From the NCBI RefSeq assembly GCF_021869535.1, contig NW_026262581.1, positions 77,190,001 through 77,254,000 of the forward strand: a stretch of 64,000 nucleotides of DNA, read 5' to 3'. Position numbers and translations under genes: made by a program. Shown here piece by piece: positions 859-12,660 of this stretch. This stretch comes from Mytilus californianus (taxonomy: Eukaryota). The notes beneath the pieces are model-generated. The model ran no database searches. It was given only the letters and a program-made list of their open reading frames with translations, and was not told the DNA's origin. Numbering within the stretch: position 1 is the stretch's first letter; each line of letters starts with the position of its first letter.

Positions 859-1044
859 CTCCATATCCTATCTGGATGGCCAGCCTGGTAAGTTTAGCCT
901 GCAGAACTGACTTCTCTTTTCGTGCTGATGCCTGTGGTGCAGGTTTCTTTGGCTCACCATTCCCCACTTTGTTGTTGACAGCATTGGTATTATTGGAATT
1001 GTGGGAGTTTCCTGTTGGCAATTCAGGATTTATTGATCCAAGAT
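859..1044 (-). CDS. PMCA: PMCA coding exon 6 (loop after site A, basic lipid-sensing segment, entry to TM3)
   Basis: atattttgatag|ATCTTGGA...TATGGAG|gtaatc; DLGSINPELPTGNSHNSNNTNAVNNKVGNGEPKKPAPQASARKEKSVLQAKLTRLAIQIGYG; 186 nt. Confidence 0.93.
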
Positions 1045-2727
1045 CTATCAAAATATAAACTAAGCATGAAGACAACAATATATTTTATTTCAACGAATTT
1101 TTTTTATATAAAAGCTGAATTAACAAAAAAAAAGATGTTCAGTTATTATATTCATATTTCAAATGTTAATTGTCCGTTCCAAATGAAACAAGACTCTACG
1201 TTTGGTCAGTAATTTTTTCTTGTGTATGTTAACAATACTTTTCCTAACCTCTTCATGGAAGACATTTTTGTACTTTTGGCTACTGTGTGTCCCAATTATA
1301 TCAAAATGTGAATTTTGGCGAAAAAATATTGTTCAGGTTGCAGTTGGACTGAAGTTAAAATTGCATAAGTATTTTAAAAGAACCACAAATTTTTAAAATT
1401 CAAATGCCAAAGCAAGCACTGACTTTTGTGGTGATATCATCTATGCTTATTCTGTTATTATTTCTTTCCACGAAAAACAACAAGCGTAACTTGCAGAGAA
1501 TAAATATTTTATGTTTGAAAATTATAGGAGACATTTTATTTCATCAAAGAGGTAAAATAGTTACCACTTTATGAGAGTTAATGTTACTGTAAATATTGTT
1601 ACTCTTGTTTGTTAGTATAGAAATCTTAATGAAAAAATACTTTTCAGAGATCATGAGACACACACAAGTGGATTTAACTAATTTATGTCATAATAGGCTG
1701 TTTTTATGCAACTTTATGTTTCAAATGTTTATGTATATTACATTATATATAAAACACATATGTATATATGAAACAATCAATTCACGCATCTACAGCAATA
1801 CTAGATCGCCATGCACAAACTGATGAGAAAAATCAATCTGAAGTATAAAACCAAGTTACCAACAGGAAACCAATTTACCCCTTTTGGTCCTTTATAAAAC
1901 TGACTGGTCCCTAAACTTGCTAACCAATAGATAACCCATTTGAATTTTCACAAAACCTTTAACAGTGTTGTAAACTTTGATCACCAGATAAAAATTAATA
2001 AGAACATGGCACAAAATCTAAAATCCTGGTCTAGCATTTACATAGCCCAACAATAATCAGCAGCCTGTAAGCCCTTATAGGAACTATTTTAAAGGAGTAG
2101 GAATATTAAATTAAGAATCTTATTTGAACCAAAATATAATGCAAATATAAAAATCTGCATATGACATCCCCGAGTCAACTGAAGAGGAACTATGTTCTTT
2201 GGTCTTGATCTATAATATTTGTATTTTTTAACCTGGGATGGTTGGATGTCTATGACATCTACTGTATGTAGGGGACCATTTCACCTAAATAATGTTCACT
2301 GTTGGAAACCATACAGCGGATTTCATTTACAAATATTACAAGACCAACATAAAATCAAAATAACAACAAAGGAATCAATAGCTCTCTGTTTAAAAACCTG
2401 CATGCAAAATCTGAACTGTGTGTTCATGCAAAACCACTTCTTTTATGCCCGAACTCAAACAATAGACTTGTATAATAGAAACTGGCTAGTTCAATGGAAA
2501 TTTAACTTAAAAACATTTCAATAATTCTCAGGAATTGAAATCAATATTGCTCAGTCATTTGTCAGTGAAGCTTTTTGCTTCAGGTGACTATACCACAGAT
2601 TTACATCAGTTCTTTCTATCTGAGCAATTCTGGTTTTAACACCTGATATTTAAAAAAAATAAAAATCCAATGAATAACTTGCAACAGAATTGATTATCAG
2701 TCATAAGATTTCAGTTGCTTCCTGCTC

Positions 2728-3080
2728 AATACTTCCTTCTATCAGAATGAAGTTATGCATAACCTTTACTATTTTTTTAAAGATAGAAAACTGAAGCCAA
2801 GCATGAACATTTTTCATAAACTCCTGAAGCCATTCAAGTTTGAATACTTCCTTCTATCAGCATGCAGTTATTCATAACCTTGACTTTATTCTAAAGTTAG
2901 AAAACTGAAGCCAATCTGTGAAACATTTTCCAAAAACTCCTGCAGCTATACAAGTTAGCCTCAAAGACCATTGTCTGTACACCTGACACAATGTTCATTT
3001 CAATGAAAAGTATCTGAACATGTGACACAATGTTCATTTCAATGAAAATGTCTGTACACCTGACACAATGTCCACTTCAA
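2728..3080. repeat. 115-bp direct duplication (2728-2945) plus three 38-39-bp tandem units (2972-3080)
   Basis: aatacttccttctatcag at 2728 and 2843; gacacaatg at 2985, 3024 and 3062. Confidence 0.9.
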
Positions 3081-3144
3081 TGACATGACAAAGCAGGAAA
3101 TCACATGCCAAACGCATGCCGAAAAAATATATAAATACACATAC

Positions 3145-3174
3145 CCACTTTAACGTCAGCGTCACTAGTAAGCA
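3145..3174 (-). CDS. Candidate alternative microexon A3 (30 nt, phase 1-1), VLTSDADVKV
   Basis: Long T-tract ttatgttttttttattag|TGCTTACTAGTGACGCTGACGTTAAAGTGG|gtatgt; no stop; two GCATG motifs within 40 nt downstream. Confidence 0.6.
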
Positions 3175-5040
3175 CTAATAAAAAAAAACATAAAAATAAT
3201 AAAATTAATAAATAATTTGGTAAATTTATAAATATTTGAAATGAATATAGTACAGAGCTAGAAAATCTATTGTAAATTAAAGGTAATAAAGGAAATGTAG
3301 AACATATCATATATAGAAATTGTATATTCATATAAAATTGCATGCTGAAGTAAATAAATAAGGATATACTGACATCCTGAAAATAACTTGCAAATAAATC
3401 TTATTTCTTCAAACACAGATAGGTGTATATTTTTTCTGATTTACTTTAATTATTTGTCATACATCTCCTCTGATTGTTGCTGAAATATTTGTCATATAAT
3501 TGTTTGCATAATATCACAATGTGTTCTGAATGTTAGAAAAGAAAGACCAATTGAGTTTCTATACTGTAAAACTTGCTTTACTTACAAACAAATTCAACTT
3601 TCTTAATCGATTTACAGTTTTTTCTAAGGAGTAATACCAAAGGGCCAATACAAGTATATTTGTATCAACAAAGCCTAAAATATAGGTCACAGTGGCTATC
3701 TTTCATAAGTGATTATTATACTCTCTAAGATGCATCCTTATATGAAGTCATAGGGTTATAGGTTACTTAATATCTGAGATCTGAACTTGGACATAAACTT
3801 CATTGCAGTTAAAGTGTAAAATGTAGGTCAGATTGACCTTCTTTTTTCTGCTTTACTTGCCAAGATGCTAACTTAAACTGAGTAATATGATTTACTGTCA
3901 CTTTTATTTGAAATTAGATCTTGAATGTAAACTTAATAAAAGCCAATGGAGCATAAAATATAGGTCAGAGTGAGATACTTTAAAAAATAAATGCTACTCC
4001 ACAAGATACTTCCTTGTTATAAGCTTGTTAGTCACTAAGTGTCTGAAATCTGAACTTGAAACTAAAATTGATTTTCAATCTGTGAAATATAAAATATTCT
4101 GTGGATTTATTTTCAATAATCACAGAATGAAACGTTTTTTTTATAAAGTTATTAAGGTAAAAAAAAATTTGCACAGAGGACCTAGTTTAATTTATATGCA
4201 TGCATTGGTTCAATAATTTGCATAATATTATAACACTCTTAAATAGATTTTATGTGACTTTCAAACATCTCTTTTTTTTTAATTCTAAAATGACCGCTAA
4301 TCCACAAACGAAAATTTTCTCATGACGTGTAGACATCTCTAAATACCATGCAGTAGCAATAATAGCCAGCCACCAATAGCATAAGCACAGAAAGGAAAGA
4401 TGCATTAAAAGACTGAAAGAAAAATTCATCTAAAATAAACAGACAAATATCAACAAATTCTAAATATCAAAATTCAAATTTGAACAAATATTAATAATTA
4501 GTAAGCTTTTCAGGCACAATTTCAGAAATTACTTTTAATGTGAATCCTTGTACAAAACAAATAATCTGAAGGTTTCACATAAACTGCTTTTTAGAAAATA
4601 ATTGTTTAACCAATTTCAAGAATAAAACTTTTGCATCACAAATGCTTAACATTTATAAATGTTTTACTGGATTCAAACATTTTGAGATATTGAAGTATTA
4701 AATGTTATTTCTTTTCCTTAGGCAAAGCTATTGATTATCATCTTTATCTTTTATAAATAGAAATGTATATTATGAAAAAATAAGATATATGACAAAATAA
4801 ATAAATCAAATAATAATATAATATGAACTGTCCAATATCTTGACATAAACAAATAAGAATAATAGAATAGAAATAATAAAATCAAAGCCAAACATATAAA
4901 GAAATGCAATAAAAAAGAAAAGAATAGCCAGACAAGACTGTATGAAATTTTTAGGATAGAAATGCAATAAATAAAAAGCCAAATAACATGTATAGAATGT
5001 ATATAATAAAACAAGTAATAAATAAAAAGCCAAATAACAC

Positions 5041-5290
5041 GTATAAAATGTGTATGATAGAAAAGCATTACAGAATACGCCACATTACATGAATAAAATG
5101 TGCATGATAGAAAAGCATTACAGAATAAGCCACATTACATGTATAAAATGTGTATGATAGAAAAGCATTACAGAATAAGCCACATTACATGTATAAAATG
5201 TGTATGATAGAAAAGCATTACAGAATTAGCCACATTACATGTATAAAATGTGTATGATAGAAAAGCATTACAGAATTAGCCATATAACAT
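5041..5290. repeat. 50-bp minisatellite x5, with degenerate units upstream to ~4800
   Basis: gtataaaatgtgtatgatagaaaagcattacagaataagccacattacat repeated every 50 nt. Confidence 0.95.
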
Positions 5291-6750
5291 GTACACAATG
5301 AGTAGTGTAACATTCAAAGCACAAAGTCAAGGTGAACATGATTGCTTTATAATGATTGCTTGAAGGCTTGCTGGACTTAAGAAGGGACTGATGTATTGCT
5401 TTCTTCCACCCACCATAGAGAATAAGTAGAGGATTATCTCAAACAACTATTAGATCACATTATGGTCATGGTATTTCTATATAGAATATGGACATGAACA
5501 AATACTAAAGCCTCAAAGGAACTGTATCATTCACCTGGTATAATAAAATGAACTAATGATTGTTTGCTTGTTGTTTGTTTAACGTCCAGTGGCAAATATT
5601 TCATGTATGTTCAGGACGACATTTATTTCTGTAAATTTTTAAAAAAGCGTTGTGCTTTGGTAGATGAAAGTCTTAAAAAATGCAGAAAACTCCTCAGAAC
5701 AGTTTTGAGCTAGGATTTACAATACATTTTGCATGACAATACTATCCCTAGCATCCACTTGAGGCTTTTCTGAAAACTTGTAACAAGAATCTAACAAGAA
5801 GTTGCACATGATGTATATCCCCTCTTCTTGTCAGACACAATTAAAAATGTAAAGTATGATCAATCAGAAAGTGACTACCAGTAACTTGCTATAAAAAAAT
5901 TGCTTACAGGGTACAGCTTAACATTATAAAGAATCAGACCAAATATCAAATCATTCCTTAATACAGGAGTTCAGTAATATGTAACCACAGCTTTTCAGAG
6001 GTGAAGTTTACAAAGAGATGACGACAGACAATGGATGCAAAGTGATGGCTTAACCTACATTTTGCTATAGTGTTGTTACTTCATTGTTGTGCAGTGTTTG
6101 GAAGCATGCATGTTATTATTTCGTGACAGTAAATGCAGAGAAAGTACATGTGGAAAGATAATATAAAAAAAAATGAAAAAGAAAATGAAAATGGAATGTA
6201 TTTATGTAAACTCTGGACATAAATTGTGAGACAACAAAGTAATAACCACACAGAGGAAGTTAGAAATAGACACAGGTTTTTTTTCCAGACGAAATGAATG
6301 CTTTATGAAAGTAAACAAAGAAGTGAGTTTCCATCTTTTTATCAAAGTAAACAAATACAGAAAACTAAGATGACAATTGGTACTAAATATATTCTGATCC
6401 CACTGAATGTTGTATTAACATGTTAAATCTTTCACCAAACAAAGCAATGGGGGGAAGGTCAGGGTTGGTGGACATAAAGATGTAAGGCACTATGTCACCT
6501 TCACTTTTTGGTAAACATATCAATGCAACATAAGATCAACATATCTTATATCCTTAGAACTTTATGAACATACCAATCATAAAACTCAAAGGATATTATT
6601 TACTTTTTTCCAAAAAAGTTTTGTATGTTAATATATGTAATAATCATACTTGTAAAAAAAGAATTTTTATGTAAATAGTGCTGTTTTTTCTATGTTGATC
6701 TTTATTTGTGAAACTATCTAAAATCTATACAAGGGAGGTAACTGACTTAC

Positions 6751-6786
6751 ATGGAACTGTTTGTCCGGCAGTGTTAGTCTGTGAAC
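6751..6786 (-). CDS. Candidate alternative microexon A2 (36 nt, phase 1-1), GSQTNTAGQTVP
   Basis: atgcttccttcccgactctggcttacag|GTTCACAGACTAACACTGCCGGACAAACAGTTCCAT|gtaagt; good acceptor, consensus GTAAGT donor, no stop, GC-rich relative to the intron. Confidence 0.7.
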
Positions 6787-7564
6787 CTGTAAGCCAGAGT
6801 CGGGAAGGAAGCATAGTTATAAAAGTCAACAAATGTCCCAATATAAAGGATCTTCACTTCAAAATGTACCTCACACTTTTTTTCACCTCTTAAAAACATA
6901 AACATGTTTCGGGTGTTGTTTTTAATGAAATTACGAGCCAATCAGAGAGTACATTATGTTCAATGAAATACTAAAGTCCCATTACATATAAAAAGTGAAG
7001 TACATTTAAAAAGTGCATATAATTTCATTCATATAACAGACTATTATCATATCAATACACTCTAAAGGATTGAATAAGTGCACAGGTGCATATTGTATGG
7101 TCTCACAACAGAACACATTGCTATCTAACAACCAAAAAACAGCAAGCAATTTTCTAAGGTTGAGAGGCGCAGACTTCAAAAATTATTTAGAATCAGTGAA
7201 AAACTAGCAGAGAAGATCATTTGTGAATAGTGATCTTTTTGAAATACATGAATGAATAAATCAGTATTTTAAAGTGTTAATTGTATCAAGTTTGGAATAA
7301 CACAAGTTAACATTTTGAAAAGTTTGAAATAAGAAGAAAAATTTTGAAAGACCCTTCATTCAAACCAAAATGATGGTAGTATAAAAAGATGACAGGATTA
7401 CAATTATAATTCATTTTTTTCATTTTAACACAACATATGCATAAAAGTCTTCTTTTCTTTTCATTTTCAAATTAGAAATGTTAGCTGTAAGTAAATCATG
7501 AAAATTGTTTGCCATTTTTCTGACAACAAAATAATAAAACTGAGAAGGCATTATTGTACTTTAC

Positions 7565-7588
7565 CTCGATATGCCACTATTGTCACTT
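7565..7588 (-). CDS. Candidate alternative microexon A1 (24 nt, phase 1-1), EVTIVAYR
   Basis: Branch-like CTGAC, a TGC and a T-tract precede tttatttgag|AAGTGACAATAGTGGCATATCGAG|gtaaag; no stop; frame-preserving. The GAG acceptor is weak. Confidence 0.45.
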
Positions 7589-8405
7589 CTCAAATAAAAA
7601 AACAAGCAAGTCAGTTGTGCTCATTCATCAATCTTAACCCTAAGGTTGCCATGTAAATTTATTTTATTATGGATATACATATACGTACAGCATATAAAAA
7701 TAATTTTGTAAAATAAACTCAGTGCTAATAAACATTTTTTTTTAATATGAACATAAGTCTATTTTGAAGACAGACAAAATTTCTACCAACTGGAAAATGA
7801 TTGGTTTCTATAATGTAGAGGAGAACGAGAGAAAAGAACAAACATGCAAACTGTACAAAATATTAAATAGGAAAAAATTCAAAACCATATAAAAATAAGA
7901 CATCCTATTTTTCTTTTAGCTCTAAAATTAAAAGTTGTGAAATAAAAGATAAAATATTTACAATACTGTATTAAGAGTAAAGACTACCATGAAAGTATTA
8001 ACCAGTTGGTAGAATCAATGCCAATGTTCATAAATCATTTAAGCAGCTGTGACAATAAAAAAAAATTGACAGCTATACTCTAACAGTCACTGTGTATACT
8101 AAAAGTTGACCACTTCTATATGAGACCAAGTGAAAAAAGGTAACCCCCGGCAGGTGTCAAATTTTCAAGCAAGGCAATCTGATCAATAGTCAATTTTGCA
8201 ATTACCTTACTGAATTTTTTTTATTTTTTGGCAATGGGCAACAACACCTAGATAGAACAGACTGTATCCCTGTCTATACAAATCTTATGGTAAGTGCATG
8301 TATTGGAAGATTTGGACAAATGAAAACTTTCAAGCATTTAACTGCATAATCATCCACTTTGCAATCCCATTTTAACCATAAATGTGTAATGCAAGTTACG
8401 AAGTA

Positions 8406-10712: not shown

Positions 10713-12660
10713 GAAACAGTTTGAGAACAAAGTTGGGAGTTGGAAAAAGGACATTTTGATTAGCTTCTTATACTGTCAGTCTGTCAAAAACTTTTAAAAG
10801 TTACAAATGTCTGTTCATGTATACTCTAAGTCTCTAACTCTATTCAATTAAAAATGGAATAAACTTATCTATTGTTTAAGCTTTTCAACAAAATATTCAG
10901 GTATTACTGGATCACAATGACTGTTAGCATGGATATCTCAAAATGAGCACAATGACTATTTGTAAACAACATATAGACAACAAACAAACAACATTTTACT
11001 TATCTATTAATATACTACACAAATATTCAATGTTGGAATTTATTTATATATGTATATATTTTCTTAAAAGATAAGTTTATTATATTTAATATCTGTATAA
11101 TATTTTCAGAAACAAGACAAACTTAATTAATTAGCAGCAACTAGCGAAAGTCATTAGCTTATAGTTTAGGCCAAAATAACCCCCTTTAATAGCCTTTTTC
11201 CTTATCATATTTTTTTTAAGTATCTTATTGTTGATATGTACTTAATCCTTTTCCTGATGATTGGACAGTTTGAAGTAGATGTACTAATTTTATTTAAGAT
11301 AAGAACTGACAAAAACATCTTTCTGCGTTGGTTTTTTAGTCTCTTATTTTCAAGTCTTGTTTTAATTTTTCCACTGTGAGACAGTTTTATCATTCAAAGT
11401 TTTAGTAATATAACTAAAACTGTAATGAATTTGTAATTTATGTTGCTTATGAAATATTACATTGAGTTTATATGCCATTAAGAATGGCCATAGTAACTCA
11501 TCAGTTATTTTACATATGACAAGTCACCAGCTTGGGACTAACAATATTGACTGAACACACTATATTTTATTATATGAAATGACCTTTACTTTACTGTATC
11601 AATCATGTGAAGGCCATTATCCTATATCCATACATTTATTGATCTAGACTTATAACATTATTGTATTAATTGAATTTTTGTCATTTTATATTTATGGTGT
11701 TATCTACCTAATCCTTTTTCTGATATATGGATGATTTTTACATTATCACTTTCTCGTCATTCTTTAAAAAAAAAATCATATGTATTACAGTTACTATTTA
11801 AAAAGTTTGTATGTATTATAATGCCTTAAAAATAATGATTCCACTTAAAAAAAAAAAAAAAATATAAGGGACTCACGACAGGAAATCTATCTTTTTATTA
11901 AGTTTTTTTATAACTTAAAGACTACTATGCAAGAAATGTAAACAGTCAATTGGAACTATTTCAAACTGGTCTCATTTATTCTTATAGTAAATTTCAATTT
12001 AAAAAATAATTAAAAGCATGAAATAATTTATTTTCAATATAAACTAGCGATGCAAAAAATCTCTATTGAAAATATTCTCACTTGAAAACTTATTTTTGAG
12101 TTATCAAGAAGATTTTTCTACACATTTCCAATATGCCTAAATGTGAAATTGGTACTGATTATTCAATAACAATATATGATTTGAAGGAACCCTCTTGTCA
12201 AAGTAGGTCTCAATGTGTTCAGTGATTCTTAAAACTATTTTTAAATTGTTACCCCCAATTTCTTGACAGTATTTATGATTATTGTATAAGACATGCAAAA
12301 CACGACAGAATGACAAAAGCACATTTACAACATAACATAACCACAGATCAGCTGCCTTAAAACTCTGTGTAGTTTAGTGATAAAACAACTGCCTATGGTT
12401 TTCTCATTGTATTCCTTCTTTGTTTGGTAATATTTTAAATCTAAATCAAAAAAATAAAAATATTTAACATGTGTTGGGATGTTAAAAATATGAGCTGTTT
12501 TTCATGCCAATCTGGATCTCTCAACAATTAAATCATTTTTTTATATGAAAAAAATGCTAACATTAATCAAATGTTAGACAATGAGGACAATGCCTTAAAA
12601 ACCTAATAACAATTACATGTACTAATGCAATCATTCTGGTATGTTTATTATTAATTTTTA

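Follow-up and report, generated by a model that had tools for sequence, protein, structure and literature searches.

Whether the long intron of a calcium-pump gene in the mussel Mytilus californianus hides a set of small, optional exons is the question raised by this locus. The window, that is, the whole stretch of 64,000 nucleotides (nt) to which all positions refer, is the plasma-membrane Ca2+-ATPase (PMCA) gene locus of this species, with 100% identity to assembly GCA_021869535.1 over 13.5 kilobases (kb). The ATP2B-like PMCA gene lies on the minus strand, and the window holds its first six coding exons (exons 1‒6). An initial annotation had proposed a cassette of three microexons, here termed A, B, and C, in the intron of 13,032 nt that separates exon 5 from exon 6. 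We conclude that this 13-kb intron very probably holds three genuine, conserved cassette microexons of phase 1-1. B and C are virtually certain to be real exons, and A is highly likely to be a real exon that is used somewhere in Mytilus. They are judged real because junction reads support C and B, and because cross-species conservation and annotated isoforms support all three.

The product of the matching locus carries the domain families PF00690, PF00122, PF13246, PF00702, PF00689, and PF12424, with the domain names Cation_ATPase_N, E1-E2_ATPase, Hydrolase, Cation_ATPase_C, and ATP_Ca_trans_C. Residues 200‒420 of the M. californianus protein match human PMCA1 (6a69_A, E 8.7e-52) and PMCA2 (9gsd_A, E 3e-49). 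From its domain set and these similarities, the predicted product is a plasma-membrane Ca2+-ATPase (PMCA/ATP2B, P2B-type ATPase). Molluscs have been reported to possess a single PMCA gene (PMC6987452). The two exons that flank the intron lie where the initial annotation had placed them. Exon 5 (14241‒14077, minus strand) encodes the last part of the actuator domain followed by a basic/acidic stretch; its peptide closes with ...KKKGDGPNE, and a single G passes on to the next exon (phase 1). Exon 6 (1044‒859, minus strand) starts with AT, encodes a variable loop followed by the conserved acidic-lipid-binding segment ...RKEKSVLQAKLTRLAIQIGYG, and aligns to residues 341‒408 of human PMCA1. A direct joint between exons 5 and 6 reads D-LGSINPELP.

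All three microexons lie on the minus strand. Microexon A (7588‒7565, 24 nt) encodes (E)VTIVAYR, microexon B (6786‒6751, 36 nt) encodes (G)SQTNTAGQTVP, and microexon C (3174‒3145, 30 nt) encodes (V/L)LTSDADVKV. A check of the sequence agreed with the proposal that each has an AG acceptor, a GT donor, a stop-free frame, a length divisible by three, and phase 1-1, and that all eight inclusion combinations are stop-free and in frame. While the three segments themselves stood, the coordinates given for the B peptide were shifted by one base, because the G of its acceptor mimics the carried-in G. The exons insert 8 (A), 12 (B), and 10 (C) residues into the loop; A adds a short hydrophobic stretch, B is polar, and C is acidic. 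Since the last base is T in B but G in exon 5, A, and C, the junction codons vary with the neighbouring exon. The junction codon before C is Val or Leu, and that before exon 6 is Asp or Tyr. Inclusion of B places Leu at the start of C and yields a conserved P-L-L.

A scan of the whole intron found 265 phase-compatible open AG..GT segments of 15‒60 nt, among which A, B, and C occupy ranks 1‒3 by a crude splice score. On the opposite strand, two segments score level with A and C and none scores level with B, and the real splice sites of the PMCA gene are likewise of modest strength. The pattern of AG..GT ends, an open frame, and a length divisible by three is by itself within chance and supports A and C only weakly. 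The decision was thus rested on the independent evidence of RNA, conservation, and isoforms.

Reads were mapped to positions 820‒6819, a stretch that contains exon 6, C, and B; A lies 750 nt outside it. The reads came from run X24, a set of stranded RNA-sequencing raw reads of the same species of which ~6% was read, and two Logan-contig runs (X1 and X3) and one run of a relative were mapped as well. In run X24, exon 6 is joined to C (1044 to 3145) by 72 reads with 54 starts, and C to B (3174 to 6751) by 20 reads with 17 starts, both joints having GT..AG ends on the gene strand. Reads exit upstream from C (54 reads, at 3174) and from B (25 reads, at 6786), and both groups continue into the end of exon 5; the consensus of their loose ends is window 14079‒14108, with agreements of 0.96 and 0.90. 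A contig of run X1 reads exon 6-C-B-exon 5, and a contig of run X3, from another Mytilus with three differences in exon 6, reads exon 6-C-exon 5. The RNA depth of exon 6 in run X24 is ~40‒68, with joints at both its ends. When depth is scaled to exon length, C is about level with exon 6 and B reaches ~30% of C. Inclusion of B is ~27% by junction counts (20 reads include it vs 54 that skip it) and ~27‒31% overall. B is a cassette exon and C is near-constitutive in this run. No joint listed for run X24 connects exon 6 with B or with any segment other than C, and no loose end at 1044 was among those listed, a further 163 minor ones being unlisted. Nor did any consensus among the listed loose ends, from reads of 820‒6819 only, lead to A. 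The junction reads by which the initial annotation proposed to be judged were found for C, joined to exons 5 and 6, and for B, joined to exon 5 and to C, and not for A, which lies outside the stretch.

Conservation was assessed against the alignable intron of M. californianus and M. trossulus, whose 79% identity served as the background. A matches M. trossulus at 23 of 24 positions, the single change turning the junction codon from Glu to Asp, and the island around it (7537..7632, minus strand) has 95/97 matches (binomial P ~4e-8 at the 79% background), with conserved intronic flanks reaching ~35‒45 nt past A on both sides. B is identical at 36 of 36 positions and sits, with conserved intronic flanks, inside a 175-nt island (6679..6853, minus strand, 171/175 identical); its acceptor context (tgcttcc...tggcttRcag) is recognisable in Pecten and Saccostrea too. 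C matches at 28 of 30 positions, and both changes are synonymous third positions. The genomes of Pecten maximus and Saccostrea echinata contain orthologous exons in the same order, with the same lengths (24/36/30), phase, and AG/GT sites, and their terminal bases match those of the mussel (G, T, and G). In whole-intron blastn, C is the top match (E 2e-13 in Pecten, 1e-11 in Saccostrea), B follows in second place (3e-7 and 2e-5), in the oyster A ranks fourth (5e-4), and all these matches of A, B, and C to scallop and oyster introns are collinear. The expectation that the exons would stand out in intron alignments across bivalves was borne out, since A, B, and C rise above the 79% background and are kept in scallop and oyster. 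The changes within A among mussel, scallop, and oyster fall mostly at synonymous or conservative positions, and its length, phase, AG, and GT are kept.

The comparison was widened to PMCA relatives, ~100 lophotrochozoan sequences reached via a Lingula protein. Peptides like B and C occur in oysters, pearl oyster, clams, gastropods, cephalopods, nemerteans, and the brachiopod Lingula. A-like inserts of 8 residues occur in scallops and oysters, and Haliotis has a 9-residue hydrophobic insert at the same spot. The Val/Leu junction switch recurs in other species between isoforms with and without B. From genomes and isoforms together, the cassette, which the initial annotation had called conserved or convergent, is conserved and not convergent within Lophotrochozoa.

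The exons had been described as hidden from annotation, which did not hold: RefSeq models of M. californianus, M. trossulus, M. edulis, M. galloprovincialis, scallops, and oysters contain them. The sequence exon 5-B-C-exon 6 of the window equals the loop of the RefSeq M. californianus isoforms X1/X5 residue for residue. Within Mytilus, the RefSeq models document three combinations only, all of which contain C: C alone (M. edulis X3/X6, M. trossulus X2, and M. galloprovincialis X2), B+C (M. californianus X1/X5, M. trossulus X1/X3, M. galloprovincialis X3, and M. coruscus), and A+C (M. edulis X2, reading DVTIVAYR). Besides M. edulis X2, A is found in RefSeq in Pecten X2, Argopecten X2, and S. 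echinata X2, and in the other oysters C. angulata X3/X5, M. gigas X10, and O. edulis X5. A+C is annotated in scallops and A+B+C in oysters, e.g., Crassostrea angulata X3, and Saccostrea cucullata has an isoform with no microexon (X5) and one with B only (X2). The combinations annotated across bivalves are thus none, B, C, A+C, B+C, and A+B+C. Oysters have a further exon of 15 or 21 nt between B and C (YVRDY/YSRNFEH); no sign of a Mytilus counterpart was seen in run X24, whose reads join C straight to B. C is optional in Saccostrea cucullata X2/X5, in a Tridacna complementary DNA (cDNA), and in Mya and Haliotis models. The claim that the cassette is combinatorial stands for bivalves at large, where the combinations vary, and is narrower for Mytilus, with only three combinations and with C constitutive in the RNA sample. 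These exons are already in automated annotation, and finding them is a rediscovery, not a new kind of thing; a literature search found no published description of mollusc site-A splicing exons.

Does the intron correspond to vertebrate splice site A? HMMER alignments to human PMCA1 (6a69) and PMCA2 (9gsd) stop at the end of exon 5 and start again with the conserved KEKSVLQ.KLT segment of exon 6, which precedes transmembrane segment 3, and the microexons fall in the unaligned gap. The intron lies in the linker between the actuator domain and M3 (A-M3 linker), the part altered by vertebrate splice site A (PMC8428515), and the placement at PMCA site A stated in the initial annotation is upheld. 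Optional, small, frame-preserving exons are present here as at vertebrate site A, B being optional by reads and A and C by isoform models. The likeness to site A of vertebrate ATP2B (PMCA1‒4) extends to the protein family and to the place of the inserts, an A-M3 linker bounded by the actuator domain on one side and by the acidic-lipid-binding segment on the other. As in ATP2B2 especially, which has three optional exons (w/x/y/z), one intron holds several small optional exons with lengths divisible by three (PMC5641333, PMC8428515). The sizes differ: vertebrate PMCA2 has inserts of 14, 31, and 45 residues and PMCA4 one of 12, against exons of 24, 36, and 30 nt in the mussel. The peptides PLL[ST]SDA..KVD of molluscs, SLRDEPDGKVD of amphioxus, and QPLKSAEGGD of vertebrates resemble one another only faintly. 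The mollusc exons may be homologous to the vertebrate w/x/y exons or may have a separate origin at the same intron. The RefSeq bivalve models (Pecten maximus X1‒X3, C. angulata X3/X5, S. cucullata X1‒X5, and others) contain the same exons and differ in being database entries without description or analysis. The same loop is present in the cDNAs of Tridacna squamosa (PMC5641333) and Crassostrea gigas (PMC6987452). In those two studies, 36‒39 extra site-A residues relative to human PMCA2z were noted and apical targeting was inferred (PMC5641333, PMC6987452), and the mollusc loop was treated as a single fixed sequence, unlike the spliced loop described here. As an example of site-A splicing in a PMCA gene, the locus is ordinary; it is annotated already and unpublished.

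Several points weigh against three genuine site-A cassette exons. The RefSeq isoforms are computed models, and the isoform support drawn from them rests on such models. No reads support A in M. californianus, A being outside the mapped 6-kb stretch, and since reads exiting B and C upstream reach exon 5 (0.90 and 0.96), transcripts with A can make up no more than a small minority in the sample of run X24. Routes that skip C, and hence full eight-way combinatorics, are seen only in non-Mytilus mollusc models and cDNAs. The mollusc loop peptides did not align to the vertebrate inserts in the HMMER comparison with human PMCA1 and PMCA2, and the functional effects of site-A inserts are known from vertebrates alone, not from molluscs.

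The alternative that survives best takes up the doubts about A and C. In it, B is the sole true cassette of Mytilus, C is a constitutive 30-nt exon, and A is conserved and rarely or never spliced in, leaving an ordinary one-cassette site. Every well-supported route out of exon 6 passes through C (72 reads), run X24 has no joint from 1044 to 6751, no read consensus leads to A, and all Mytilus isoforms seen contain C, as such a site would have it. However, M. edulis X2 contains A, and the coding sequence, splice sites, and flanks of A are strongly constrained between Mytilus species. C is skipped in Saccostrea cucullata X2/X5, in the Tridacna cDNA, and in the Mya and Haliotis models. In addition, the reads represent ~6% of one RNA run from an unspecified tissue, with the 163 minor loose ends unlisted. 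We consider a one-cassette site unlikely, and three cassette exons remain the preferred reading.

A further alternative concerns A and holds that its island is a splicing-regulatory or other non-coding element whose exon-like look is incidental. We regard this as very improbable. Seven RefSeq isoforms in six species translate A at the exact position, and the mostly synonymous or conservative changes, together with the length, phase, AG, and GT kept in mussel, scallop, and oyster, are those of a coding exon, even though conservation runs ~35‒45 nt beyond A on both sides and other non-exonic islands lie near, e.g., 7182‒7009 and 8096‒7992. That A, B, and C are non-exonic, chance open AG..GT stretches of a long AT-rich intron, as the 265 compatible segments and the two opposite-strand segments scoring like A and C would allow, can practically be dismissed, since junction reads refute it for B and C, conservation of all three is far over the intron background and reaches distant bivalve genomes, and each occurs in annotated isoforms.

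On the preferred reading of three cassette exons, practically every transcript in the sampled RNA contains C, roughly one in four to one in three contains B, and A is rare or absent. The bulk isoforms expected in mussels are C and B+C, and A is most likely limited to particular tissues or stages. Exon choice also alters the junction codons, with Val/Leu at the start of C and Asp/Tyr at the start of exon 6. Inserts in vertebrate PMCA2 and PMCA4 alter activity, lipid sensitivity, or apical/basolateral targeting (PMC8428515, PMC5641333). By analogy, the altered length and composition of the A-M3 linker beside the acidic-lipid site probably modulate basal activity, activation by acidic lipids, and/or membrane targeting; a change in this linker also shifts apical vs basolateral targeting in vertebrate PMCA2. 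The tuning of Ca2+ export put forward in the initial annotation is an inference of this kind. Whether the mussel isoforms would differ measurably in activity or targeting seems to us about evenly balanced on this analogy.

Work on the mollusc shell infers the apical or basolateral site of PMCA, and hence the Ca2+ route to the shell, from the loop length of one isoform (PMC5641333, PMC6987452). The loop described here is alternatively spliced, with 10 or 22 extra residues in RNA and 18 in the A+C model of M. edulis. Inferences from loop length therefore call first for expression data that tell the isoforms apart in mantle, gill, muscle, and nerve. Vertebrates are not alone in splicing several microexons at PMCA site A.

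Neural microexons that depend on the eMIC of SRRM3/4 show neural-restricted inclusion and have UGC close upstream of the 3′ splice site. A UGC lies ~17‒19 nt upstream of A in Mytilus and is absent from the Pecten and Saccostrea orthologues. On this motif, a neural SRRM3/4 eMIC programme for A is only a lead.

A bolder proposal regards the site-A cassette as a splicing module of great age, lophotrochozoan or possibly bilaterian, with a conserved functional junction-codon switch, for example a P-L-L sorting or lipid-interaction motif formed when B is included; in Mytilus, the island at 7182‒7009 would control it or might instead hold a fourth microexon of 18 nt, specific to the genus. We hold this rather doubtful, and a literature search found no published description of it. 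The island in question is an ultraconserved intronic segment between A and B (7009..7182, minus strand, 174 nt, 173/174 identical to M. trossulus) that is open in the gene frame throughout and lies outside the mapped stretch 820‒6819. Within it, an 18-nt AG..GT phase-1 segment at 7124‒7107 ranks fourth by splice score and has a UGC-rich acceptor context; this segment may be a candidate microexon, its membership of the cassette being unproven. The island has no Rfam match, and the whole intron at E<=1 gave one microRNA match at chance level. Its fold is no better than those of shuffled sequences (z -1.2), whole-intron blastn found no conservation of it in Pecten or Saccostrea, and no second copy was found among the gene loci searched. 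Another conserved intronic island, upstream of A (7992‒8096), is 102/105 identical to M. trossulus and does not look clearly like an exon. A base-pairing model built on inverted repeats around A and B was rejected, the short AT-rich pairs being at chance level.

Some observations on PMCA sequences of relatives stand beside these results. In the Tridacna squamosa cDNA (P0274) and the models of Mya (P0329) and Haliotis (P0328), B runs directly into exon 6 and the junction codon is Tyr, which, as read from these sequences, is C skipping. The published Tridacna mantle PMCA would then, we infer, be one splice isoform among several. The Lingula anatina model P0157 has a tandem duplication of the exon 2‒5 region (residues ~95‒325 and 326‒556), which looks like an assembly or annotation artefact, and a second Lingula model (P0270) is without the duplication and without a B-like insert. 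Decapod RefSeq PMCA isoforms (P0276/P0307 and others) are set apart by ~23 inserted residues at this point of the loop, and variation at site A is thus annotated in arthropods too.

The remaining exons of the window, all on the minus strand, lie near 34.4 kb (exon 1), 29.7 kb (exon 2), 26.0 kb (exon 3), and 15.2 kb (exon 4). The site-A intron is rich in minisatellites between 2728 and 13467. These arrays are located at 12660‒13467 (40 nt x 20), 10373‒10712 (43/86 nt), 9614‒10185 (161 nt x 3.5), 9251‒9415, 8613‒9199 (135 nt x 4.5), 4939‒5304 (50 nt x 7), 2972‒3083, and 2728‒2956, and parts of the array at 8.4‒9.2 kb recur elsewhere in the PMCA gene. At 5561‒5619, ~55 nt show extreme depth in every run mapped, with a word depth of 1e5‒1e6 in the relative's run and, in the RNA run, reads from either strand; this segment forms the centre of a transcribed interspersed repeat with a very high copy number. 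An element resembling an open reading frame, with the motif FPFSNLSLPQPNVMKLIHNAYYHKTQIKFEFWW, occurs in minus-strand frames at ~60.2‒61.2 kb, 26.3‒26.8 kb, and 22.4‒23.3 kb. It has several tandem or dispersed copies in PMCA introns and upstream of the gene and is probably an interspersed repeat family.

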